Positions 2,031-43,600 of a stretch of 64,000 nt of DNA are shown piece by piece (the first letter of the stretch is position 1; the number at the start of each line of letters is the position of its first letter). Source of the DNA: Octopus sinensis (lineage: Eukaryota); assembly GCF_006345805.1 (NCBI RefSeq), contig NC_043000.1, positions 81,158,001 through 81,222,000 of the forward strand, read 5' to 3'. Below the pieces are notes generated by a model. It worked only from the letters and a program-made list of their open reading frames with translations, did not search any database and had not been told where the DNA came from. The position numbers were made by a program, and so were the translations under genes.

Positions 2031-4134
2031 GTGAGTCAGGGCTTACATATGCATTGATGTATGTGTAGAAATGTTTGTATAATGTATTTCTACATCACTT
2101 TACTACATGTGTGTGTACGATTACTTTTTATGAACATGTGTTTGTTTATTCCAGGCAGGACATTCAATAGGAAAAATCATAAGAATAAGGGTGGGGGTGC
2201 GGGCGTATGTGCGCGCGCGGAAACAGCATCAGCATAAGTTTATATTTGTTTTCCTTGCTGACATAGTATGGCTGATTGTCATTGTCTTATTAAGAGTTAC
2301 TGCCCTTCGAAGTTGGATGGAGGATTATGTCATACTCACACAATTAAGTGTTGGTTTGTTTTCTTTGGTTGCATGTTTTTCTTGTTCTGGACCATTTTAT
2401 TAAGTATACTGGATGCATTTTATTATGGCACCAGCACTACAGCAATTGCCTTGTCTCATGTAAAACTAGAGAATGCATGTGTGGGGGGTGGGGGTGTACA
2501 CAGCTGACTCTCTGGCTGAATATTTATGTTTATGTGTATGCATATACACACAACTTGCATGTAAAAGAAGTTACTTTTATCAGTTATCCACCTTAGATCA
2601 CAATGATTTCAGCATGTTCCAAAATTATCACTTCCTCCAACAAACACTGAGCAGCTTTGGTACTTCCAAGGAATACCCATGTGCCTTTGCTCTATATTTT
2701 AGCTTGATTTTCACCCTCGCTGTTATGTATGCAGCCACACAATAACAGACCAAGTACATCTGTAGCCATGCAGTATCTATTTTAATTTATGATTTACTGT
2801 GGATTTGTTCTTCTCTCTTAGCTTTGGTCTTTTGCCTACATTTCTGTTACTTCTTTGTTGTAGCAGTTTCTATGCATCCCTCTCCATTTTGTGAATTACA
2901 GCTCTGCTGTCCTTCCCAAGCTCAAAACCCAGCAGTTAGGGCATTGTGGAACTAACCATAAACCTATGGCTTCTAACCTCTCCAAGAAGCACCGTACACT
3001 TCTATCCTTGTGCCTCACATGACTCCCACATATTCTAGGTCCTTTGTTTAATGTACCCTTTCCTTATTGCCACAGGCACTGTCAGCTCAATAATTGGCAC
3101 TGATTTTTATTAAATCAGTCCCTAAGAAAAAAATTAGGGCATTTATTTGTTATTGTAATTTGAATTGGGTATAATAACACTTCTTTCAAATCCACATATA
3201 TATTCCAGACATTAGCAACATGAGTAAGTCTGAGTTCTGATATTTCTTTATTTATCCTCTAGTGTTGTCTTTTCTCACTTTCATTGCATAAAACAACAGG
3301 ATATGCTTAGATGTCGATTTTTATTTCATTGGCACTGCTGCATTATTGTTTTAGTGCATCAGCAATGATACTCAAGACTTGGTTATACTAGGTATATTCT
3401 ACAAGGAATGCCTTGTAAGCTGTTAAAACATTCTCCAGTAATGCATAATGTCCAAACAGATAACAGTCTGTCGCCATTTTAGCTCCATCATTATGCACAA
3501 TAATAAGGATGGGTGATTTTACTCTGTTGCTTTGTGTTTAGTAACAAGTACCATGAGTGAGGGATAAAGTACTGTGAAAGTCATCCAATCTATGTTAGCA
3601 TGGAAAAAGTAGATTTAAAGATATAAAGATGTATATACATGATAATGTTTTATGAAAGCACATGACCTTGTGGTTAGGGTGTTGCACTCTCAATTTCTAG
3701 ATCATGGGTTTGATTCTCAGACCAGGCAGCATGTTGCTCCATTTCCCCTTTCAATCAAGGGGAAAATGTTGTCCTGCTCACCTACCTAGTAGGGTTGTCA
3801 TTCAAAGGTTAAAACAATGCAAAGTAGGCATTGTGACCAGCAGTGTATAGCATCTGATAGTCAGGTCAACCATATGATCATCACATGATCATGTGATGAT
3901 ATTTTCATTTATTATTATTTAGTTTATTATTATAGTTACCCAAGCCATAATAAATTGGTTGTCTATATGGACTCCTGTATGTTAACAGACTAGTTCTCAT
4001 AGCCATATCTGTTACAAAGTTAGAAGGAAAATTTCTGACACAGAAGGAAGGAATTGAGAGACTTAGGAGTTAATTTAGCACAGTTTTAGCTAGTAGAAAA
4101 GAGAACATCAATAACTGGGAAGTGACAATAATCA

Positions 4135-4385
4135 GTATGAAGAAAGGGAGTAAGTAGAATGTCTAAACCACGAAACGAATGCTCACAGTTGGTGCACAAA
4201 AGATGCAGTGGAATCTCTGAAAGAATAAGAGAAAAAGAGGATTTCATATTTGATAGATACACAGGCATAGTCAGCAGTGAGAGCACCCAACAGATGAAAG
4301 CTGTCAACTGCTCAAGAGTGCTGTTAGAAGTAGTTGATAGTATCTGTAACCTCATCAACGGTGGAGGTGGGTGTTATGAAAGATT
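4135..4385 (+). mobile_element. Older RTE fragment covering the PHD finger and LEVVD motif
   Basis: SV*RKGVSR...CSQLVHKRCSGISERIREKEDFIFDRYTG...LLEVVDSI aligns with 34050-34300. Confidence 0.7.
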
Positions 4386-5789
4386 TCCCTGCCCCATTCT
4401 TATTCTGACTACTAGCCAGAATAAGAATGGGGTAGGAAAAGTTCAGGGATATATTAATCCTTTTCACAATAATGGGCAGACTGTATGATGCTTGTGTATA
4501 ACATGTAATATTGGTTTCAAATTTTAGTAAAAGGCCAGGATGGTCGGTGGGAGTGGGTAAGTCAATTACATTGAGCCCATTGCTCAACTGGTATTTAGTT
4601 TTTATATTCTCAAAAGATGAAAGGCAAAGTCAACCACGGCAGAATTTGAACACAGAATGTAAAGAGATACGAAATGCTACTAAGCATTTTGCCTGGCATG
4701 CTAACAATTTTGCCAGCTTGCCGCTTTTATAACATATAATATTGCATGAGAGTGAAAGATGGGCATTGTATGTGGTGAAACTGTCATTTAGAGCTGCATT
4801 TCCCAAACAGGGTTCCTCAGAATCCTAGTGTCTTGTGAGAAGTCATTAGGGGGCCTGAGTCATTTTTAGATGTAAAGTCTATATTCACAATTTCATTTTA
4901 CATGCACAGTATATTTGAAATACTACCATTTGTCCCATTGAGGAAAGGAGCTTATGACAGGAATTGTCAGGGAATTTCGTCTAAACAAGGTCTTGGTTAA
5001 ATCAAAATTTCTTAAACTTCCTTTGTGGCATCTTATGGATTTAAGTTCTGGTAAACCTTTCAAAGATAGTTTTATGGTTAGTTTAATCTTTTTATGAAAT
5101 CTAACTGTAGGAAAGAGAAAGAAAAGAAACTGAAAAGATATATGATAATTTTTACTAGCAGACATGGAATGTATTTCAATGGTTCAAAAAAAAAAAAAAA
5201 AAAGGTTGGAAACACTGTAGGTTGGTTTACAAGTGTTGCTTTCCACAGAATACTATAAACGTAAAACAATCAAGCAAGGTGTAAGGGGAATAACTACTGT
5301 TATCTTTAATGTTGAAATTTCATTCCACGCTTGGAAATAACCTGATTCTCATTCAGCCACAAATAATTATATTATCTGCATCCACGAGCCAACGACTAGC
5401 CAGGAACAACAGTCAAATCTCCTTCATGAAGCGCGCGCACGCACTCGCACGCATATACACACATACACACACATTGGCAGGTTCTGTGGTATATATACAC
5501 GACACAAGCATTTCATGTGTACATTATATATACATTTATATACACATACATTGCATATAAAAAAAAAATATATATATATAAATACTTACATATACATATA
5601 TATATATATTATTTCATACACATATATTCCATACATGCATACATTACTTGCACAACAGTAAATACTTTTCTTTATATTATTTCTAAATGATTCTAAAGAT
5701 GAAGGAGAGTGCTTATAACCTTTGTGGTTTATTAACCTCATCATCATCATCATCATCATTGTCATTACCACCACAACTACCATCATCAT

Positions 5790-6639: not shown

Positions 6640-6960
6640 AAGAAATATATAGGGTAGGAGACAACAGTTCTAAGGAAGAAGAATTAGTCAAGTGTTTTGT
6701 GTTAAGTCTGGATGTTGAGATGTAGTAAGGATGACAAGAAGAGAATATATAAGTATATCACATTGGTTTTGTGTGAAGAGGGTGTATTAACTAGCTAGTT
6801 CAGAGAAACAGAAGTCATTGCAGTAGTGGTAGAAGTTACAACAAGAGGAGCCTGTGTATTTGTGAAGCTGTGATCGAAGAGTGTTGGAGTGACATAGCAT
6901 TGGCAATCATTTCAATGGTCTTTAGTATGGCATGGTCTAAGTTATTTATTCTTGTGACAA
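6640..6960 (-). mobile_element. Possible highly degenerate LINE C-terminal remnant
   Basis: Minus fragments NNLDHAILKTIEMIA / FYHYCNDFCFSELAS / FFLRT weakly resemble the LDRIQ..A / FYRYY.G.CS.ELA / SFFPRT motifs of CR1/Jockey-group ORF2 ends. Confidence 0.3.
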
Positions 6961-11984: not shown

Positions 11985-12160
<176 letters not shown>

Positions 12161-12788: not shown

Positions 12789-13007
12789 GGTTTCAAATTT
12801 TGCCATAAGGGCAGTAATTTGGCAGGAGAGGACTAATCGATTACATGGACTCCAGTGTTCAAGTGGTACTTATTTTATTGACCCCAAAATGATGAAAGGC
12901 AAAGTCGACCATGGTGGAATTTGAACTCAGAACGTAGTTTCAGGCAAAATACCGCTAAGCATTTCATCCAGCGTGCTAACAATTCCACAGCTTTCTGCCT
13001 TAATAAC

Positions 13008-13043
<36 letters not shown>

Positions 13044-13065
13044 TATAATAATAATAATAATAATG

Positions 13066-13096
<31 letters not shown>

Positions 13097-13258
13097 TAAT
13101 AATAATAATAATAATAATCCTCTTTACTATAGGCACAAGGTCAGAAATTTTAAGGGTGAGAGTAAGTTGATTACATCGATCCCAGTGTTCAACTGGTACT
13201 TATTTTACTGACACTGAAAGGATGAAAAGCAAAGTCAACCCTGGTGGCATTTGAACCA
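12789..13258 (-). mobile_element. Two SINE-A copies (12789-13002 full, 13117-13258 partial) separated by (AAT)n
   Basis: Reverse complement of the SINE-A consensus; flanked by long (AAT)n tracts. Confidence 0.85.
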
Positions 13259-15894
13259 TCATTATCATGTCTATCGCATCTCTCTTGTACATTACAGCTG
13301 ATGCTTCTAACACCCAGTTTTTCTCTCTCCATATTTGCATTCTATCATTCATGCATGCTGACATTAGACATCCAGCGAAGCATGCTTGTTTCATTTCTAT
13401 CCAGATTTTGCATATCCTCTTCATTGAATACTTGTGTTTTCACAATCATGTAATATCACACTGTAGACACAAACATCACACAGTTTGTCTATCAACCAAA
13501 AAAAAATACCTTAATTATTAACAGAACTAATAGATCCCTGCATTTTCCCCCCACTCCATTCTTATTCTAAGTATTATGACTGGGTTCTCAATAAAGAGTT
13601 TTTATCTACTCCAGTTCCACATATCAAGCATGGATTTTTCCCAGTTATGAGCAGAGTTCTGTTTTCTTTTCTGAAAACTAAGAAATTTTGTTTTCACTAA
13701 ATTGACCATTAGGCTTTTCAATTTTAGATCCTATTTCCAGTTTCAGAACTTTCTCTCAATTCTTTGGCTTATTTAACTAGATATGTGTTTCTCAAACATT
13801 CATTCCCTATAGACCCTTTTGATTCCTATTTTGCTCCATAGGTTCCCTGTAATCATTCAATGTTTAAAAAGACAAGCCTATTATATTTTTATCATTAAAT
13901 ATTTATTAGGAATTGAATGAAAAAGTTGATAAAATATTTTGTGTATGATAGACGTATAAGCAATTAATCGCACATAAATTTTAACTGTAAAATCTTATAT
14001 GGACCCCAGTAGAGGACCACTGGACTAGACCATCAAGATACAGGAGTTCTCAGACAGCCAGTCTTAAACTTTATTGTTATGGCCAGGTGGGCTATAATAA
14101 ACACCTGGATGTTAAATTCTTCCCTCAACTTATTGGTTGTCTCTCACTTTGCCTATAGTCTTTTTGTGTATGGCTCATAAGTCATTCTTCTACTCCCAGC
14201 TTTTATAGCAACCTGCAGACTATAGAGTGTGGTACCTTGTGAAAGATTTTCTCCTGATCAGTAAATGATTAGTTCTTGGTTAAGAAATTTTCTTATAGTT
14301 ATCTCATTAAGAAAAGTGCATTGGTGTTTCCTTATCCATGCACAAACCCAAACAGCATTTTATCATAGCTAGTTCTCTCCCTCTATGTGGTCAGTCAACT
14401 TGCTAAAAATATCAGCCAAATCTCCCTCAAATCATGGCTTATCTTCAATAAGGAAAACACTTATTGGATAATGTAGTCATTCTTTTGTTGTTCTACCAAA
14501 AGTATGCGTGGCTCCTGGTGAGCTCCTGAACATCCGCCATGTGTTTGTCATGGAATCTTTATTAAAGAAACTTAGGCAGTATTTCCTTTGCTTTCATCCA
14601 GGTATTTTTTACAGGATACTATCTTGTCTGCTTAATTCCTCTTACATGTCTGGGTACTTGTAATGAAAAACTCCAGAACAAATACCACGAAGCTGTGTAC
14701 TGTGATTTAACTATTCTACAAATCTACAATACCAGACAGGCAGAGGTACCTTGTTTTTTCTGAATCCCAGAAGGATACTAAGCAAAAATAACCTCAAAGT
14801 GGCTTGAACTCAGAACATAAAGAGCTGCAACAAACATGAGTTACTTTGATCTTCTGATATTTTAGTAATCCTACCAATTTGCTGCCTGACGTAGTTCTTT
14901 TATCTTTTTTTTTTTCTTTTTGCTGCTTTCATGGATTCTCATGACTCTCTGTCGCCATCCAATTCCATTATTATGAATCTTAACTGGGAGCTTGAGTTGT
15001 AGAAAGTCTTTCATAATAGCTGATTATACAACAAAGGACACTAACATTATGGATGCATTGCAGTTACTCTCTTGATAGAACTTAATGATCCTAACAGTTG
15101 ATCTTCTGGGACTCCTCTGTTCAGCATCAATACAAGAAGCACTGTTGGCTCAGTGGAGTTCTTCCTCTACCTCTTCACAATCTGCCATGCTGCAGTCTCA
15201 TGACTTCACTGTAGCCCTATCAAGGTGGCTGAACAGGTGCTATGCCTTGCCAAAGGGCAGCCCATAACTATGCAGGGCATGGTCATTACTCTGTGAGGTA
15301 TTTTCAAAATACCTGTATACCCTAAGTTCTCCTTATCATCCCTAAAAGAAGATGGCATGATCATCGCTAGAGCATCTTCAGTCATAGATAAATCAGTTCA
15401 TTCACTATTGATAGGAGTGTTACACAAATGGAATCAAATATATTTATGGATCCCACCTAGTGGAGAGGTTCAGCTGAGCATACTAGGTACCACAGATGTG
15501 TTCAATTAGAGCTGGTCTGGAGCTACCCAGAACAACAACGACAACACTGTTAAATATGAGCATCAACCACATTGATTTAATGAGTCTGGGAGAGTCTACA
15601 AATGTCACAGGTGCTCATTATCTCTCCTACAACTAATTAATTGTTTCTTTAATCAGTATTGGTGGAGAAGAGGAAGAAGAAAGAGACCAAATCTGCATTA
15701 TCATCAATTCAGATACAAAAACAAAACAAAAATGATTTTTCAAAATCTTTAAATGGAATATTTCATTTTTATTATTTGTGAAATGTTTTAACACTCCCAT
15801 CTCCCATCACCACAACAAAAATAAAATATAATAAAATAAAATAAATAACCACAAAAGAAATAATACTCAAAATCATAAGACCTTAGCACTAATG

Positions 15895-17629: not shown

Positions 17630-18240
17630 TTATTCTTTTACTTGTTTCAGCCTTAAATTCTTTGCTAAATAAATCAATCCCAGTACATAAGGGTTTTCTT
17701 TTTTTTTTCAAGCCTGGTACTCATTCTATTGGTGTTCTTTGCTGAACTACTAAGTAACAGGGACGTGAACACACCAGCACCAGTTGTTAAGCAGTGGTAG
17801 GTGGGAACAAACACAGACACAAAGACACACATACAGATATATGTACATATATGTGTGCCAATGCTGCCTGACTGGCCCTTGTGCTGGTGGCACATAAAAA
17901 GCACCCACTACACTCTTAGAGTAGTTGGCATTAGGAGGGGCGTAGAAACCTTGCTAGATCAGATTGGGGCCTGGTGCAGCCTCCTGTCTTGCCAGTCGTC
18001 AGTCAAACCATTCAACCCGTGTCAGCATGGAAAGTGGGTGTTAAATGATGATGATGATGATGATATATACAGAACAGGCTTGCTTCAGTTTTCATCTACT
18101 AAAACCACCAACAAGGATTTGGTCAGCCTGAGACTATAGTAGAAGACACTTGCCCAAGATGCCATGCAGCTGGAGTGAATCCAGAACCATGTGGTTGGGA
18201 AGCAAGCTTCTTACCTGACAGTCACACCTGCACCTATAGA
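17630..18240 (-). mobile_element. CORE-type SINE-B split by an oppositely oriented RTE-tail fragment (17860-18065, +)
   Basis: Tail and body at 17630-17830, head at 18075-18240; the insert carries gttggcattaggaggggcgt...(GAT)n. Confidence 0.7.
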
Positions 18241-20460: not shown

Positions 20461-21132
20461 GAAGTTAAAGTAACGACAAGGTAATGATTGAAGCCACCTG
20501 ACACTTTGTTATCAGAGCATGATATAACAGAGTTACACAATGGTTTCGGTGTAATTGTAGATATCAGGTGAACCAAACTTTTATCTTATTACAAGTTTCA
20601 AGAACAAAAAGAATTCAACCTTGTTTTGATGTATATTGTATTACACAATGAATGTAATTAAACTCTGTATTTTATTCTTTTCTTTTATGTTGTCAAGAGG
20701 TGCACAGATGATGAAATAACTTAAGTTCATGAACTTTTCCCTACTTCCTATTTGTATGCTCACTCAGACAATCATTCGTTTCTTTGGAATCTACTGTTTC
20801 ACTCTGCTATTTTGTTTTAAATCAGTGATATGCTATCTTAAGCTTTGTTTCTTTCAAAGAAGCCAGTGTTTATTTTCTTAACTTATATATGAACACTAAA
20901 TTTAGAATATAGCTTCTTTCTTATAGTACTGTAGTTTTACTATCTTTCATGGCGTGCTGAGTAAACCAAATTTTATTTATTCCTCTCTTTCCTTCTCAAT
21001 GGCTGTGTACTCTGTAGAAATGTGTTTTGCTTTGAAACACATGTTATTTATTTTTTTACCAACTTGTGTGAAACAGGTCTGTTACAGCAACCTATTTTTT
21101 CTTTCATTAATTGTTCTGTTTACATATGCTAT

Positions 21133-21292
<160 letters not shown>

Positions 21293-29965: not shown

Positions 29966-31260
29966 TTAACGTCTGTTCTCCTTGCTGGCATGGGTTGGAC
30001 AGCTTGACTGGACTGGCACACTGGAAGGCTGCACCAGGCTCCAGTCTGGTTCGGCATGGTTCTCTTTGGCAGGATGCCCTTCTTAATGTCAACCACTCTG
30101 AGAGTGAAAAGGGTGTTTTTACATGCCACCAGCATGAATGCCATTTGTGTGACACTGGTATCTGCCATGACTGCAATTTTGCTCGGCTTGGTGGGTCTTC
30201 TTCTCAAGCATGGCATAATGCCAAAGGTCCTGGTCATTGTCTCTATGAGGCCCAACACTTGAACAGAACTCAACCACTCTGCCTCCATGAGGCCCAACGC
30301 TCGAAAGGAACACAGCCACTTTGCCTCTGTCAGGCCCAACACTTGAAAGGAACTCAGCTTTGCCTCCATGAGGGCCAATGTTCAAAGGTTGATTTTTTTA
30401 CATACCACCAGCACAAGTGCACTTGACTTGAGGGGTCCTCTTAAGCAGAGCACACCGCCAAAGGTTTTGGTCATTAGTCATTGCCTCTGTGAGGTTCAAA
30501 GTTCAAAGAGCATACTTCACCACCTCGTCCCATGTCTTCCTGCATTTACCTCTACCACAGGTTCCCTCCATAGTTAGAGATTGGCACTTCTTTACACAGC
30601 TGTCCTCATCCATACACATCACATGACCATACTAGCACAGTCGTCTCTCTTGCACAACACATCTGATTCCTCTTATGCATAAGTTTTCTCTCAAGATGCT
30701 ATACTGTGTTGAACATGCACACTGACATTGCATATCCAGTGCTTCATTTCTCTCAAGCCTATGCATGTCCTCAGCTGTTATAGCTCATGTTTCACTGCCA
30801 TACAGCATAGCTGTTCGCACCCAGGTATCAAAAAATCCTCTGTTGCCAGCAGAAGTAGGAGCTCTCTGAACCTTGCCCAACCTAATTGTATTCTCACAGT
30901 TATGCTCTCAGAACATCCAGATACCAGAAGCTATCTACTACCTCTAGCTTGCCCCCCTTGGCAGTTGATGAAGTCTATTTTCCACACATGTGCAGCATTT
31001 ATTATGCCTGTGTACCTTCCACATACAAAAGTTAGTTTCTTGGTTAACCTTCCTTTGATGTTGCTGCACCTTTTGTGTGTCCAAAGCTTACAGTGGGTGT
31101 ATCTTATGGAGTTCCTCTCTACACCATTTCTACAGATTGAGCCAGGCCATCTACTTGAGGGGATGTGTGATTTGTCTGCCTTCCTATTAACTATGACTTT
31201 GGTTTTTGCTAGATCCTTTGATTTTATACCTTGTTTCCATACCTAGAACTTCTTCTCTAG
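29910..31260 (-). mobile_element. RTE LINE fragment (PHD-bearing family) with rearranged 3' end
   Basis: Minus translation VWKQGIKSKDLAKTKV...SRWPGSICRNGVERNSIRYTHCKLWTHKRCSNIKGRLTKKLTFVCGRY. Colinear with 33.9-34.8 kb; shares the ggatgcccttc tail and a (GAT)n end. Confidence 0.9.
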
Positions 31261-32585
31261 CTCAGGTAGTGATTCAGCTACTCCTACACAATAAAACAGT
31301 CCAGGAACATTGAAAGAGAAGCATGATTTTAAGAAACTGTGGAAACACAGATATTACATTCTTTGATGGCATTGTGGCTACTTTAGTCTTTGCTGCCAAT
31401 AAGATCATTTGTTCCTAGAAAAATGCTAGGAATTCATTGACCCAGTTTAAAGCAGATGAAAGATCATTTAAAACCTATTGTCTGATGAAATAGAACCTCT
31501 CCTAAGATTCATGATATCACTCAACCTCACTACCTACATTTTCTCAATGATTTTTAGGAAGAGATGAAAGTGGTTTATGCACCAATAGATTAGCAAAATA
31601 TTATACAGCTTGAATAACAAGAAGGTAAATTTGTGCAAGAGATACTTTCCTTGGTTCTGGGTATGTGTGTGTCTGTCATTTTATTTATTTTGTTTGGGCA
31701 GAAACAGTTTGTTCTGTGATACGTTTATTGGCTCCAAATCATAAAAACAGTAAACTCCAGATATTTTTCCACTTAAAAACCTCTTTTTTAAGGTGATTAG
31801 TTTTGTTCAAAGAACAAACATATGCCACCCATATGGTGTCCTGGCACACTCAAAATAAACATAAATATTTTTAACCATTGTTCATGGTTTGTGCATGCTC
31901 ACCATTCTCTGCTTTTGCTTCTGTCCTCATCTCTACTATCAGTCACTTACTTTCACACTCTCATGAATCTGCATACCCATCTTACCTTCCCTGATTCTCT
32001 GCCTCTATTCTTTCTGTCCACCTTGAACCTTAAGAGCATTACCTGACGCCTTATCTTCACCATACTTTCACCCTTTTCTGCTAGGGTAACCATGTCTCTC
32101 CTATAGCAAGATATTTGTTCCGCTCTTTCTTTCCTATTTTAGCCTCTCACCTGACACAGAACACCCAATACACCCTCTAAAGTGGTTGATGTTTGGAAAG
32201 GCATCTAGCCACAGAAACCTTGCCAAAAGTAGACATTGGAGATCAGCACAGCTTTCAGGCTAATTGGATCTAGTTAAACCATTCGGCTTGTGCCAGCTTG
32301 TTATGGTTGTTCGATAATGATGACATTATCTACATGTGTACATTTATATATATATATATACAATAAGCTTTATTCAGTTTCTGGTTACCAGATCTACTTG
32401 TAAGGCTGCATTCATTACAATTTGTAGAGGATGTGATTTTTTATTGAAACTAAAGCTGAGAGTTTGTTTTGAGTGAAACTTGAGTTATGACAAAACTCAC
32501 AGCTTCGGTTTTAATAAAAGAAAAAACCCACATCCTATACAATGTTTTGAGCACTACTTTCTCATTTGTGTGACATAAAGCAATA

Positions 32586-32665
<80 letters not shown>

Positions 32666-33059
32666 TGTGTGTGATGATTGATAATTATTTATTAATTACA
32701 AAATTAATGGACATCATCTCTGACAGTTGTTTTGATTCAAAAACTTCAGAAATTAATTAATATAATTAAAAACATTATAAAGTTGAATTTCATCAGTGGG
32801 AGAGAGATGTACCACTACACTTTCATACTATTGTGTGTTGAGTGAACAGAGAAAATCCATAATAATAATTGTTTTATAGATGATAATTGTTTTATAGATG
32901 ATATTAACCTTTCAAAGCCGGGGGAAGGTAGAATATTTATTGAATAATTCTCTAAATATACTATCCTCCCCACTTTTGTAAGGTTAATACCATCTTCTTT
33001 CTATAAAACAATTATCAGTTAGTGGATTTGCTCCATACACTCAACACACAATCTCTTGC

Positions 33060-35392
33060 ACTAAATGAGGCTGCAAAGAGAGAGGTTTGGAGACGCCACT
33101 ATGAAAGGTTGCTCAATAAAGAAAATGAATGGGAGAAAGAGAATCTGCCAAATGTCGACCCAACAGAGGGAGCAGCTATCTGAGTTGACAGTTCCTTGGT
33201 AGATAAAGCAATTAAGAGTATGAAGACAGGGGAACCCTCTGGCTTATCAGGAATTACTGCAGAGATGCTCAAAATATCTAGCAGTGTCGGCTATAGCCTA
33301 GTCACCCGTATAGTTAACCAGGTGATACATGAAGGAGTCATACCCAATGACTGGTGTAGCAGCATAATAGTCAACTGCTACAAAGGTAAAGGTGATGCTT
33401 TAGATACAAATAATTACAGAGGTATCAAGTTGTTGGATCAGGTAATGAAGGTTACGGAGAGGGTCATAGCCCAACTAATTAGGGAGAGAGTCAGTTTAGA
33501 TAAGATGCAGTTTGGGTTCGTGCCAGGGAAAAGCACCACTGATGCTATATTTCTGGTAAGACAGCTGCAGGAGAAATACCTAGTCAAAGATAAACCTCTG
33601 TACCTGGCTTTCGTTGACATGAAGAAAGCCTTTGATAGGGTCCCCTGATCCCTTATCTGGGATGCTAGGGATAGATGAATGGTTAGTGAGAGCTGTGAAA
33701 GCTATGTACAGGGATGCTGTCAATAAGGTGAGGGTTAGCAACAAGTACAGGGAAGAATTCCGGGTAGAGGTAGGGGTCCACCAAGGTTCAGTCTTCAGTC
33801 CCCTCCTATTTATCATAGTCCTCCAGGCAATAATGGAGTAATTCAGACAGGATGCCCCTGGGAGCTCCTCTATGCTGACAACCTTGCTCTAATTGCTGAG
33901 TCCCTATCAGAACTAGAGGTGAAGTTTCAAGTGTGGAAACAAGGATTAGAATCGAAGGGCCTTAGAGTCAACCTAGCTAAAACCAAAGTCCTAATAATTA
34001 GGAAGGCAGGTAAACCACAAATCCCTTTAGGTTGATGACCCTGCTCAATCTGTAAAAAAGGCATAGGTAGAAACTCTATAAGATGTACCCAGTGTAAGCT
34101 ATGAACACATAAGAGGTGCAGCAATATCAAAGGAAGGCTAACTCGGAAGATAGTTTTTGTATGTGGCAGATGCTCAGGAGCAATAAACACTGAAAATGTG
34201 CAGAGAACAACTTCTGCCACATTCCAGGAAGAAAAACTAGAAGTAGTTGATAGCTTCCATTACCTAGGTGACTAAGTCAGTTGTGGGGAAGGGTGCGCTG
34301 AAAGTGTAGCTGCTAGAATAAGAATAGCCTGGGCTAAGTTCAGAGAGCTCTTACCTCTGCTGGTGACAAAGGGCCTCTTGCTCAGAGTAAAAGTTAAACT
34401 GTATGACGCATGTGTATGAACAGCCATGCTACATGGCAGTGAAACATGGGCCATGACTGCTGAAGATATGCATAAGCTTGCAAGGAATAAAGCCAGTATG
34501 CACTGATGGATGTGTAATGACAGTGTGCATACTCAACAGTGTTTAGTACCTTGAGAGAAAAGTTGAACCTAAGAAGCATTGGATGTGGTGTGCAAGAGAG
34601 ACGATTGCACTGGTATGGATGGCCATGTGGCAAGAATGGATGTGGATAACTGGGTGAAAAAGTGCTACACCATAGCAGTTGAGGGAACCTGTGGAAGAAG
34701 TAGACCCAGGAAGACCTGGGATGAGGTGGTGAAGCATGGCCTTCGAATATTGGGCCTCACTGAGGTAATGACTAGTGACCGGGACCTTTGGAAATATACT
34801 GTGCTTGAGAAGACTCGGCAAGCTCAAGTGAGACCATAACCTTGTGGCCTATGCCAGGGGTGTAACCAGCCCACTTATGTGTACCTTTCCTTCGTTGGAC
34901 ACTAAACTCTGTTTGCAAAGACCTGTTGAGGCAAGTGAAATCGAAATTGAAATCAAATTCAATGACTGGCATCCAAGCTAGTGGAGCACTGAAAGTACCA
35001 TAAGAGCGTGAATGTTGACAGCACGTAAAAAGCACCATTCTAGCGTGATCATTACCTGCATCACGTTATTGGCACTTGTGCTGGTGGCATGTGAAAAAAC
35101 ATTGGAGCGAGGTTGTTGCCAGTGCCACTGGACTGGCTCCTGTGCAGGTGGCACACAAAAAGCACCATTTGAGCGTGGCCATTGCCAGTACCACCTGACT
35201 GGCCTTCGTGCCGGTGGCACGTAAAAGCACCCACTGCACTCTTGGAGTGGTTGGCGTTAGGAAGGGCATCCAGCAGTAGAAACTCTGCTAGATCAGATTG
35301 GAGTCTGGTGCAGCCATCTAGTTTGCCAGACCTCAATCAAATCGTCCAACCCATGCTAGCATGGAAAGCGGATATTAAACGATGATGATGAT
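33060..35392 (+). mobile_element. 5'-truncated, disabled RTE-clade LINE (RT, C-terminal region, structured 3' UTR, (GAT)n tail)
   Basis: Manual translation across stops and frameshifts: REVWRRHYERLLNKENEW...VDKAIKSMKTG...GITAEMLK...YKGKGDALDTNNYRGIKLL...QFGFVPGKSTTDAIF...FVDMKKAFDRVP...GVHQGSVFSPLLF...WELLYADNL (33871)...GLRVNLAKTKV...LEVVDSFHYLGD...LHGSETW...GHVARMD...RPRKTWDEVV...LGLTEVMTSDRDLW. These are canonical RTE RT and C-terminal motifs. The copy ends in gatgatgatg. Confidence 0.95.
34042..34173 (+). other. C4HC3 PHD-type zinc finger encoded in-frame inside the RTE reverse transcriptase
   Basis: CSICKKGIGRNSIRCTQCKL*THKRCSNIKGRLTRKIVFVCGRC gives C-x2-C-x10-C-x2-C-x4-H-x2-C-x14-C-x2-C. 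The TGA corresponds to W in the copy at ~31.1 kb (KLWTHKRC). Confidence 0.85.
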
Positions 35393-38429: not shown

Positions 38430-39535
38430 TATATATCATCATCATTATCATCACCATCATTATCATCATCATCATCATTTAACGTCCATTATCCATGCTG
38501 GCATAGGTTGAACGGTTTGACCAGGCTGGTATGCTGGAAGGTTGCACATGACTCCAGTCTGATTTGGCATGGTTTTCTATGGCTGGATGCCCTTCCTAAT
38601 GCCAGTCACTCTGAGTGTGTAACAGGTGCTTTTACATGCCACCAGCTTAGGTGCCAATTTGCGTGACATGAGTATCTGTCACGACTACGATTTTGCTTGG
38701 CTTGATAGGTCCTCTTCTCAAGTGTGACATAATACCAAAGATCTCAGTCATTGCCTGTGTGAGGCCAAACGCTCAAAAGGAACTCAGCTGCTTTGCCTGT
38801 GTGAGGCCCAATGCTCAAAGGAACTCAGTCACTATGCTTCTGTGAAGCCCAAAACTCAAAAGGAACTCAGCCAATTTGCCTGTGAAGCCCAATGCTTGAA
38901 AGGTGTTCCTTATATACCACGGGTGCACTTGGCTTGAGGGGTCCTCTTAAGCACAGCATATCACCAAAGGTCTTGGTCATTAGTTATTGCCTCTGTGAGG
39001 CTCAAAGATCAAAGATCATGCTTCACCACTTTGTCCTATGTCTTCCTGGGTTTACTTCTACCATAGGTTCCCTCGACAGTTAGAGACTGGCACTTCTTTA
39101 CACAGCTGTCCTTGTCCATACACATCACATGACCATACCAGCATAGTTGTCTCTCTTACACACCACATCTGATGCTTAACTTTTTCTTATGCTTAACTTT
39201 TCTCTCAAGATGCGTACACTCTGTCGAACATGCACACTGCCATTGCACATCCAGTGAAGCATACTGGCTTCATTTCTTTCAAGCCTATTCACTGGTATGC
39301 AGCATAGCTGTTCAAACACAGGCATCAATCAGCCTTTCACTCTGAGAGAGAAGCCCTTTGGTACTAGCAGGGGTAGGAGCTCTCTGAACTTTGCCAATCC
39401 TAATCTTATTCACACAGCTATGCTCTCGGAGCATCCACCTCCACTACTAACACTGTCACCCAGATACCAGAAGCTATCTACTGCCTCTAGCTTGCCCCCC
39501 AATGGCAGTTGATGGAGTCTGTTTTCTGCCCATTT
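38430..39535 (-). mobile_element. RTE LINE fragment with the same rearranged 3' end as 29.9-31.3 kb
   Basis: Colinear with 30.0-30.97 kb (e.g. gttagagactggcacttctttacacagctgtcc). Has four ~42-bp repeats at 38750-38900 and the RTE tail. Confidence 0.9.
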
Positions 39536-40109: not shown

Positions 40110-40166
<57 letters not shown>

Positions 40167-40229
40167 TATGTATGTATGTACATGTATGTATATGTATGTA
40201 TATATATATATATTTATATATATATACAC

Positions 40230-40260
<31 letters not shown>

Positions 40261-40418
40261 TGTATAAACATATATATATATTATATATATATACACATAT
40301 GTATATATATATATATATATTATATATATATACACACACATATATATACATATCTATGTGCGTATATATATATATATATATATATAGACATACACACATA
40401 TGTATGTGTGTGTGTGTT

Positions 40419-40454
<36 letters not shown>

Positions 40455-40887
40455 TATGTATATATATATACATATGTATGTATATCTATATATACATATA
40501 TATATATATAATATTATTGGTGAATTGAAGAATTGAAGATAATTTCAATTATCCGCACCAACGCACGGTTGCGACACCATATGGTTGTACCTCCAACCGT
40601 GCTGTCTTCTGCTGTGATTTTTGCTACCAAGGTATCGGTTAAACTTTTGTTTAATCTGCTACAAGATTATTCATCTTTCTATTTCACATAATATATATAT
40701 ATATACATATACATGTGTATACTTATATATACATATATATATATATTTATGTGTGTGTGTGTGCATGTATGAATGAATGTAATACACATATTAGATTTAT
40801 GTAACATATGTGTGTATAGATGTATAAAATGTAAACACTCATACTATTTATGTATATATGTATGTATTTATATGTGTATATCTATAC

Positions 40888-43001: not shown

Positions 43002-43039
<38 letters not shown>

Positions 43040-43046
<7 letters not shown>

Positions 43047-43283
43047 GTATGTGTATATATGTATATGTAACTATACATATGATAATAAATATGCGTATAC
43101 CTATGTGTATATATAAATACAAACATGCACAAATCTATATATATATACACACACACATGTTTGTGTGTATATATGTATGTATATATATGTGTATGTATAT
43201 AAATATGCATGTACTTAAATATGTATATGTATACGTATATGCATATATACATATGTGCATGTGTGTGATCATGTATATATAAG

Positions 43284-43315
<32 letters not shown>

Positions 43316-43561
43316 ATATATGTATATGTATGTGTATATGTATATGTAACTATACATATGATAATAAATATGCGTATACCTATGTGTATATATAAATACA
43401 AACATGCACAAATCTATATATATATACACACACACATGTTTGTGTGTATATATGTATGTATATATATGTGTATGTATATAAATATGCATGTACTTAAATA
43501 TGTATATGTATACGTATATGCATATATACATATGTGCATGTGTGTGATCATGTATATATAA

Positions 43562-43600
<39 letters not shown>
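43040..43600. repeat. ~279-bp tandem duplication of TA/TG-rich sequence
   Basis: ataataaatatgcgtatacctatg at 43082 and 43361; units bounded by (TA)n. Confidence 0.85.

Follow-up and report, generated by a model that had tools for sequence, protein, structure and literature searches.

The 64-kb window analyzed here, the whole stretch of 64,000 nucleotides (nt) spanning positions 81,158,001 to 81,222,000 of the forward strand of contig NC_043000.1 of Octopus sinensis, carries decayed copies of an RTE-like long interspersed nuclear element (LINE), in whose reverse transcriptase (RT) a PHD-type C4HC3 zinc finger is lodged between motifs 6 and 7. The copy of main concern lies on the forward strand and is truncated at its 5′ end (Table 1). 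Its segment 33043-34836 matched amino acids (aa) ~330-948 of the intact relatives P0033, P0080 and P0013 by tblastn; of the ~950-1100 aa of the full-length protein it covers roughly residues 330-950, without the endonuclease domain. Downstream of the stop codon (34837-34839), the 3′ untranslated region (UTR) could be aligned to other copies in the window and to L002, an intact relative (64% aa identity), up to a (GAT)n tail near position 35381.

Table 1. Positions of the LINE copies, RT motifs, finger and 3′ UTR module (window coordinates unless a contig is named)
Feature	Position	Strand	Remarks
5′-truncated decayed RTE-like LINE copy	33043..35392	+	RT, finger, thumb/C-terminal domain, 3′ UTR ~550 nt, short (GAT)n tail
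RT motif 5 LLYADNL	33865..33885	+	aligned to invariant Y594 A595 D596 D597 of P0080
RT motif 6 GLRVNLAKTKV	33958..33990	+	aligned to P0080 G623 L624 ... K630 T631 K632 and BovB GLKLNIQKTKI
PHD-type C4HC3 finger (Pro, then C1 to C8)	34039..34173	+	disabled by TGA at 34102-34104
RT motif 7 / primer-grip region LEVVDSFHYLGD	34237..34272	+	aligned to invariant F723 Y725 L726 G727 of P0080
Second decayed copy	30407..31287	-	motif 6 to C-terminus; 69% nt identity to the forward-strand copy
Third, more diverged decayed copy	3957..4498	+	half-finger remnant at 4177-4260
Fourth, heavily decayed copy	13001..14382	-	finger remnant NPCLICGTGVDKNSLL at 13636-13589, then internal deletion
Fifth copy	38928..39499	-	truncated 3′ of finger; thumb/C-terminal part only
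3′ module sites, window	35192-35392 (+), 30158-29943 (-), 38668-38456 (-), 17869-18069 (+), 53463-53194 (-), 46055-45869 (-), 58251-58198 (-)		
3′ module sites elsewhere	L002 1829-2037; L001 3948-3988		

Read in frame +3, the interval 33000-35000 yields WELLYADNLALIAES, which holds LLYADNL, the catalytic YADD of motif 5 having decayed to YADN, with GLRVNLAKTKV downstream of it. The segment LIIRKAGKPQIPLG then runs into two TGA stops at 34033-34038, directly before the finger, which reads PCSICKKGIGRNSIRCTQCKL and THKRCSNIKGRLTRKIVFVCGRC on either side of a further TGA that is Trp in the relatives. Beyond the finger come SGAINTENVQRTTSATFQEEK and motif 7, the latter containing FHYLGD. The ligands are spaced C-x2-C-x10-C-x2-C-x4-H-x2-C-x14-C-x2-C, and a six-frame search of the window with this complete pattern as a regular expression found one match (34042-34173, forward strand), whereas 200 shuffles gave none. 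A first-pass annotation of this DNA, made from the letters alone, had reported an exact C4HC3 finger between GLRVNLAKTKV and motif 7; that report is borne out at 34039-34173 in frame +3, the only match of the window.

The same annotation had placed related inserts at the equivalent position of a minus-strand copy and of a more diverged copy, and both were recovered. The remnant in the second copy, RWPGSICRNGVERNSIRYTHCKLWTHKRCSNIKGRLTKKLTFVCGRY (31152-31012), keeps the Trp and has C1 changed to G, C3 to Y and C8 to Y, while that in the third copy (4177-4260) reads ECSQLVHKRCSGISERIREKEDFIFDRY, with a half-finger ECSQLVHKRCSG...FIFDRY. The fourth copy, which likewise bears a finger remnant, ends in a (TTA)39 tail (13001-13118, Tandem Repeats Finder). 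All copies in the window are pseudogenes with stops and frameshifts, and it could be argued that the finger is either a chance Cys/His pattern in a decayed pseudogene or a host exon captured once. In favor of such an artefact are three in-frame stops within or beside the forward-strand finger and the score of the unrepaired window protein on the Pfam PHD model (18.7 bits against a gathering cut-off of 24). The pattern never arose in the shuffles, though, and every window copy spanning the insertion site, four in all, keeps the finger or remnants of it. Together with the homologue counts and ligand invariance described below, the shuffles refute both forms of this explanation, whose remaining probability we regard as close to nil.

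Homologues were collected with the conceptual translation of the window element as query, which returned at least 1586 proteins at E ≤ 1e-10. The exact C4HC3 pattern was present at the same position in 117 of the best 120, with the spacing of the window in 101 of these 117; the three exceptions were one truncation, one C8-to-S change and one insertion of a single residue. In an alignment of 91 sequences (~50% identity), the eight ligands were invariant (C651, C654, C665, C668, H673, C676, C691 and C694 in P0080), as was P650, and G657, V658, G659, N661, S662, I663, W671, S677, G681 and L683 were at least 90% conserved. Mean column identity reached 57% in the finger segment vs 39% over the whole protein. 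Among 1.84 billion proteins, a profile of the finger alone picked out 4590 representative ones at E ≤ 1e-3, of which 1032 reached E ≤ 1e-10; the best 150 of these matches were mostly short fragments of open reading frames (ORFs), and the intact frames show motif 6 upstream and CYLGD downstream. The two named members are from the hydrozoan Hydractinia symbiolongicarpus and the bivalve Mercenaria mercenaria. Several 90%-identity clusters of 100-650 members include intact finger-bearing proteins of 1056-1100 aa and, because so many near-identical members coexist with intact ORFs, these clusters suggest that finger-bearing families have been active recently. At the level of sequence, conservation of this kind shows the finger to be built into the enzyme and kept by selection across a very large LINE lineage, and the earlier view of the insert as a family trait rather than a one-off capture is upheld.

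Some peculiarities were noted among the homologues. P0241 and P0242 carry the finger twice in tandem, ~70-75 residues apart, either because the insert was duplicated locally or through an artefact of assembly. P0080, although an intact ORF of 921 aa, is without ~140 residues of the linker between endonuclease and RT that are found in P0033, P0013 and P0119 (1056-1100 aa; alignment columns ~360-498). P0015, P0623, P0410 and P0448 comprise a PHD-bearing RT filed under ‘Herbaspirillum sp.’ (metagenome-assembled genome, RefSeq WP_ entry) and BovB-like RTs filed under ‘Mycolicibacterium malmesburyense’ and ‘Babesia bigemina’. LINE RTs under such microbial names most likely reflect contamination of the assemblies with host DNA. 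The matter has a bearing on annotation in general, gene predictors turning fragments of the element into ‘PHD finger’ or ‘uncharacterized’ proteins, some of them in bacterial bins.

The first-pass annotation had called the finger PHD-type and had proposed a Pfam scan and a structure prediction as checks. P0080 passed the gathering cut-off of PF00628 with 28.5 bits, the stop-repaired window finger with 27.5 and P0017 with 24.4. P0033 (23.8) and P0119 (22.4) fell just below it, and the unrepaired window protein also fell short. Other zinc modules (C1 domain, RING, ZZ and TFIIIC finger) were rejected, all of them scoring under their own cut-offs and under PHD (for example, C1_1 21.7 vs 26.5 and zf-RING_16 13.7 vs 27.4). 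AlphaFold2 modeling of full-length P0080 with the 91-sequence alignment gave a mean predicted local distance difference test (pLDDT) score of 82 and values of 93-97 for residues 641-700; the first ~90 residues were poorly modeled (pLDDT <50). The modeled finger has short strands at S-I-Y and W-V-H followed by a helix, and is predicted to form a cross-brace with a small two-stranded sheet, like solved PHD fingers. Modeled in isolation, the finger reached a mean pLDDT of 82.8, and a Foldseek search of the PDB with this isolated model returned 49 PHD fingers and one FYVE domain among the top 50 matches. The best of these was Pygo1 (2vpd and 2vpg; template modeling score 0.60-0.63, probability 1.0), followed by ING1/4/5, BPTF, BAZ2A and others; the E-values were weak, 8e-3 at best, as is to be expected at a domain size of ~60 residues. 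Searched against PDB sequences, the finger profile likewise retrieved Pygo2 and Pygo1 first (E 5e-8), then PHF23, Alfin-like 3, KDM5B, PHF2, PHF13, TAF3 and BPTF. With RVT_1 and PHD both found by Pfam, a PHD-like fold predicted and the Cys and His residues conserved, the proposed checks turned out in favor of a PHD finger, and we are nearly certain that a genuine, conserved PHD fold lies inside the RT.

The position of the finger could be delineated from several alignments. P0080 comprises the Pfam domains Exo_endo_phos (44-185), RVT_1 (431-636) and PHD (651-694) and no others; neither RNase H nor CCHC domains were found by Pfam in the full-length protein. Sequence alignments with human L1 ORF2p (E 3e-30) and with R2 proteins break off at motif 6, where the insert begins or just within it. 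The model of the whole of P0080 matched the structures of L1 ORF2p (E 6.5e-33) and R2 in Foldseek, which also retrieved the apurinic/apyrimidinic endonuclease (APE) domains of L1 and TRAS1. For the classic RTE element BovB, we used as query a C-terminal half whose best 120 of at least 8000 matches (E ≤ 1e-10) were 85-99% identical and mostly Bos and Ovis proteins; none of these 120 carried PF00628. A family profile aligned to a BovB profile (Bos, Ovis) by hhalign with a probability of 100% (E 8.9e-42, 411 aligned columns). In both MAFFT and hhalign, the two proteins stay colinear from the RT onward, through to the final motif of the C-terminus (RGRxRxxW ... DRxxWR), at ~25% identity outside the insert, with a single large gap at P0080 ~643-705 that corresponds to the finger and its linkers (~62 residues). 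From the Lys of motif 6 to the aromatic residue of motif 7, BovB has ~25 residues, without a finger or any Cys/His pattern, vs ~95 in the finger lineage. These alignments show that the PHD finger sits after palm motif 6 and ahead of motif 7, the primer grip, and agree, through RVT_1, L1/R2 and BovB, with its earlier placement inside the RT and beside that grip.

The host element had been assigned to the RTE family. Like BovB and RTE, the lineage has a single ORF with an N-terminal APE domain and an RT and a simple-repeat 3′ tail. The intact element on the ENA contig L001 consists of one ORF of 921 aa with APE, RT and PHD, and no sizeable ORF1 was seen in the 470 nt upstream of it; its stop codon runs directly into (TGA)5 and then (ATT)n. 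L002 and the window copies end in a conserved module of ~200 nt and then (GAT)n. In the RTE group the 3′ end consists of short tandem repeats of three to five nucleotides in place of poly(A), and the trinucleotide ends seen here are of this type, but the 3′ UTR of the window subfamily, at ~550 nt, is not very short. Named relatives of the endonuclease part are called ‘craniofacial development protein 2-like’, a name that stems from the RTE-derived part of bovine BCNT/CFDP2. On the grounds of the single APE and RT ORF, the trinucleotide-repeat tail and the profile homology to BovB, the element is RTE-like by sequence, either RTE proper or RTEX, and the earlier assignment stands in this form. 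The L001 element lies between two tracts of ATT-type trinucleotide repeats (3510-3535 and 6764-6825), with ATTATTATTATTACTT as a possible target-site duplication; it may have inserted into a microsatellite matching its own tail.

PHD fingers as such are not foreign to LINEs. Kapitonov and Jurka reportedly described, in 2003, PHD domains in the ORF1 proteins of CR1/L2-group elements. The PHD fingers of this group, which belongs to the Jockey superfamily, occur in ORF1 or, where there is a single ORF, at its N-terminus (PMC4120745), in agreement with what the first-pass annotation had stated of them; they have been proposed to aid general genome targeting, in the absence of a functional study, and the structure of ORF2 has been called highly constrained (PMC4120745). 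What the present lineage shares with the CR1/L2 group is a LINE-encoded PHD finger; here, in contrast, the finger lies within the catalytic RT domain that ORF2 of an RTE-like element encodes. Thus, an accessory PHD finger of a LINE is known and its placement inside the RT is new and unusual, although Repbase or Dfam entries may note it. In the full-text literature searched, outside Repbase Reports, Dfam notes and most subscription journals, no PHD finger inside an RTE-type RT was described, and the supplements of the octopus RTE paper held no matching sequences. The architecture is already visible as automatic Pfam annotation, in that many of the best 120 homologues carry PF00078 together with PF00628.

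As to what the finger does, a lead is provided by R2, whose motif 6a touches the target DNA upstream and wedges into it (PMC11204384; PMC12180492). Motif 6a is, like the insert, an elaborated segment after motif 6 of a non-LTR (long terminal repeat) RT, the two being likened by linear position. It differs from the insert in being a loop and not a zinc finger, and R2 has N-terminal ZnF/Myb domains and a restriction-like endonuclease, neither of which occurs in the finger lineage. By analogy, the finger would serve as an expanded motif 6a and engage the target in the course of target-primed reverse transcription (TPRT), holding target DNA, or nucleosomal DNA together with the histone H3 tail, beside the primer grip. 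We propose this because the insert corresponds in linear position to R2 motif 6a, because Pfam recognizes no nucleic-acid-binding domain in the protein besides APE and RT, and because the finger is strongly basic: its net charge over 47 residues averages +6.5 (range +1 to +11) vs -6 for Pygo1/2, with conserved basic positions at K26, K/R27 and K/R45 of the finger. The mechanism itself is a serious candidate to be held tentatively, while the account as a whole, in which a selected PHD finger within an RTE-like RT engages the target, is on balance probable and the best explanation that we can offer.

The same features could be read in another way, with the finger binding the RNA of the element itself, through the (GAU)n/(AUU)n tail or a module of the 3′ UTR, or bracing palm and thumb or mediating protein-protein contacts, and playing no part in target choice. 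Basic charge would suit RNA as well, the conserved ~200-nt 3′ module and trinucleotide tail are features that the RT may need to recognize, and the rise in pLDDT from the isolated finger to the full-length context is a hint of packing against the RT. Nothing specific ties the finger to RNA, however, the equivalent loop of R2 contacts target DNA, and BovB works without any such domain, so that we hold an RNA-binding or structural module to be rather improbable.

Several points nonetheless weigh against target engagement by the finger. The equivalence to motif 6a is an analogy drawn from linear position and a naming convention; the AlphaFold2 models were built without zinc; and strong conservation could also be explained by a purely structural role or by packing against the RT body. 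The nearest PHD relatives, moreover, are readers of methylated H3K4 and not nucleic-acid binders. The most conserved residues of the finger apart from the ligands (an aromatic two positions before C1, V10, S14, I15, W23 and L35) map onto the histone pocket of Pygo, for which reason a peptide ligand is still plausible.

This last point leads to the alternative that the finger reads histone tails, binding the N-terminal tail of H3, K4-methylated or unmodified, and so tying integration to chromatin state. The best matches by sequence and fold are H3K4me2/3 readers (Pygo1/2, PHF23, Alfin-like 3, PHF2, PHF13, TAF3, BPTF and ING). The nearest solved domain, both by profile and by fold, is the Pygopus PHD finger (PDB 2vpe, 2vpd and 4up0), which shares with the LINE finger the motif YPCGxC ... 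V ... (A/S)I.C..C..W.H..C.G...L ... C..C. Six Pygo residues, Y341, V350, A356, I357, W366 and L382, line the K4me and A1/T3 pockets (PMC2726290), and all six are kept in the LINE finger: in a HMMER alignment (n = 103), Y341 appears as Y, W or F in 95, V350 as V in 97, A356 as S in 96, I357 as I in 99, W366 as W in 102 and L382 as L in 99. Of the walls of the methyl-lysine pocket, Y341 and W366 of Pygo1 are aligned with the aromatic before C1 (95/103) and the Trp two residues before the His (102/103), and the third wall, D352, is deleted. Yet V, I, W and L belong to the core of every PHD fold, and the acidic peptide-binding face of H3K4me readers is not present. Pygo is acidic, in particular on its histone face, and carries an EVND lip after C2, whereas the LINE finger is basic and more compact and has R-K at this lip (R-K-G-V-G in place of EVND). 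The K4 pocket has lost its D352/D353 lip, the invariant E360 of Pygo falls on a variable position, and the loops of the A1 pocket are 6 residues shorter than in Pygo, which has 9 extra loop residues, including some in the alpha1-beta5 region, its contact with BCL9 HD1. A finger that serves simply as a histone-tail reader is, in our view, unlikely. Histone reading can also be combined with target engagement, in that a basic reader could touch both DNA and the H3 tail, since the tail emerges between the DNA gyres. With regard to the earlier suggestion of a module guiding target choice, the general idea has gained from the contact of R2 motif 6a with target DNA and stays a conjecture, while its H3K4me3 flavor has lost ground to the basic charge and the missing acidic lip residues of Pygo.

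Chromatin readers coupled to integration machinery are known from the PHD finger of RAG2 and from the chromodomain of chromovirus integrases. These have in common with the LINE finger a reader-type module joined to a DNA-insertion enzyme, but they are terminal appendages of a recombinase or an integrase; to our knowledge, neither is inserted inside a polymerase palm. That the LINE finger should be a working reader of the H3 tail or the nucleosome within the catalytic palm, gating TPRT of a widespread RTE-like lineage by chromatin state, is a doubtful proposition. If true, it would be the first chromatin reader built into the polymerase domain of a mobile element, and a natural exchangeable module for redirecting LINE-based insertion. 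Little is understood of how endonuclease-bearing LINEs locate and keep hold of their targets when they have no dedicated DNA-binding domain, and the finger offers a concrete handle on this question. It is a small domain that could be expressed separately, mutated or swapped with the linker of BovB, and is experimentally tractable. The copy in the window is a fossil; the feature is large and clean at the level of the family, and its function is what we infer.

The 3′ UTR of the window elements has a conserved feature of its own. Its last ~200 nt form a module, followed by (GAT)n, with the core GGTGGCACGTAAAAnCACC ... GTTAGGAAGGGCATCCAGCnGTAGAAA ... CCATGCCAGCATGGA. The module of the window and that of an unrelated sample share 75-78% identity, and the window has 8 occurrences of the 19-mer GTTAGGAAGGGCATCCAGC, where 0 would be expected. 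The core recurs in L001, where it lies in the 5′ UTR at a distance of 30 nt from the ATG, and several full-length relatives appear to carry it in translated form at their N-terminus (for example, ‘LALGRASSCKILPQ’ in P0572). Scanned against Rfam, neither the element nor its 3′ UTR gave a match at or near a gathering score. The module could be a recognition element for the RT, the tail of a short interspersed nuclear element that shares it, or a promoter.

Other repeats accompany the LINE copies. A 42-bp tandem repeat of 3.5 units with 77-80% matches lies at 30237-30378 and at 38751-38903, in the 3′ UTRs of two minus-strand copies and just past the ORF; Tandem Repeats Finder reported none of this type in the forward-strand copy. 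At the 5′ truncation point of the latter lies an imperfect palindrome (32830-33052; 223 bp, 73% self-complementary), with an 18-bp direct repeat at 32865-32903. The window as a whole has 35% G+C and no ORF resembling a host gene. It is rich in (TA)n, (TATC)n, (ATAG)n and (AC)n microsatellites (for instance, at 43014-43598, 40119-40514, 21130-21289 and 11986-12132), and includes a TA-rich unit of 279 bp present in 2.1 repeats at 98% identity.

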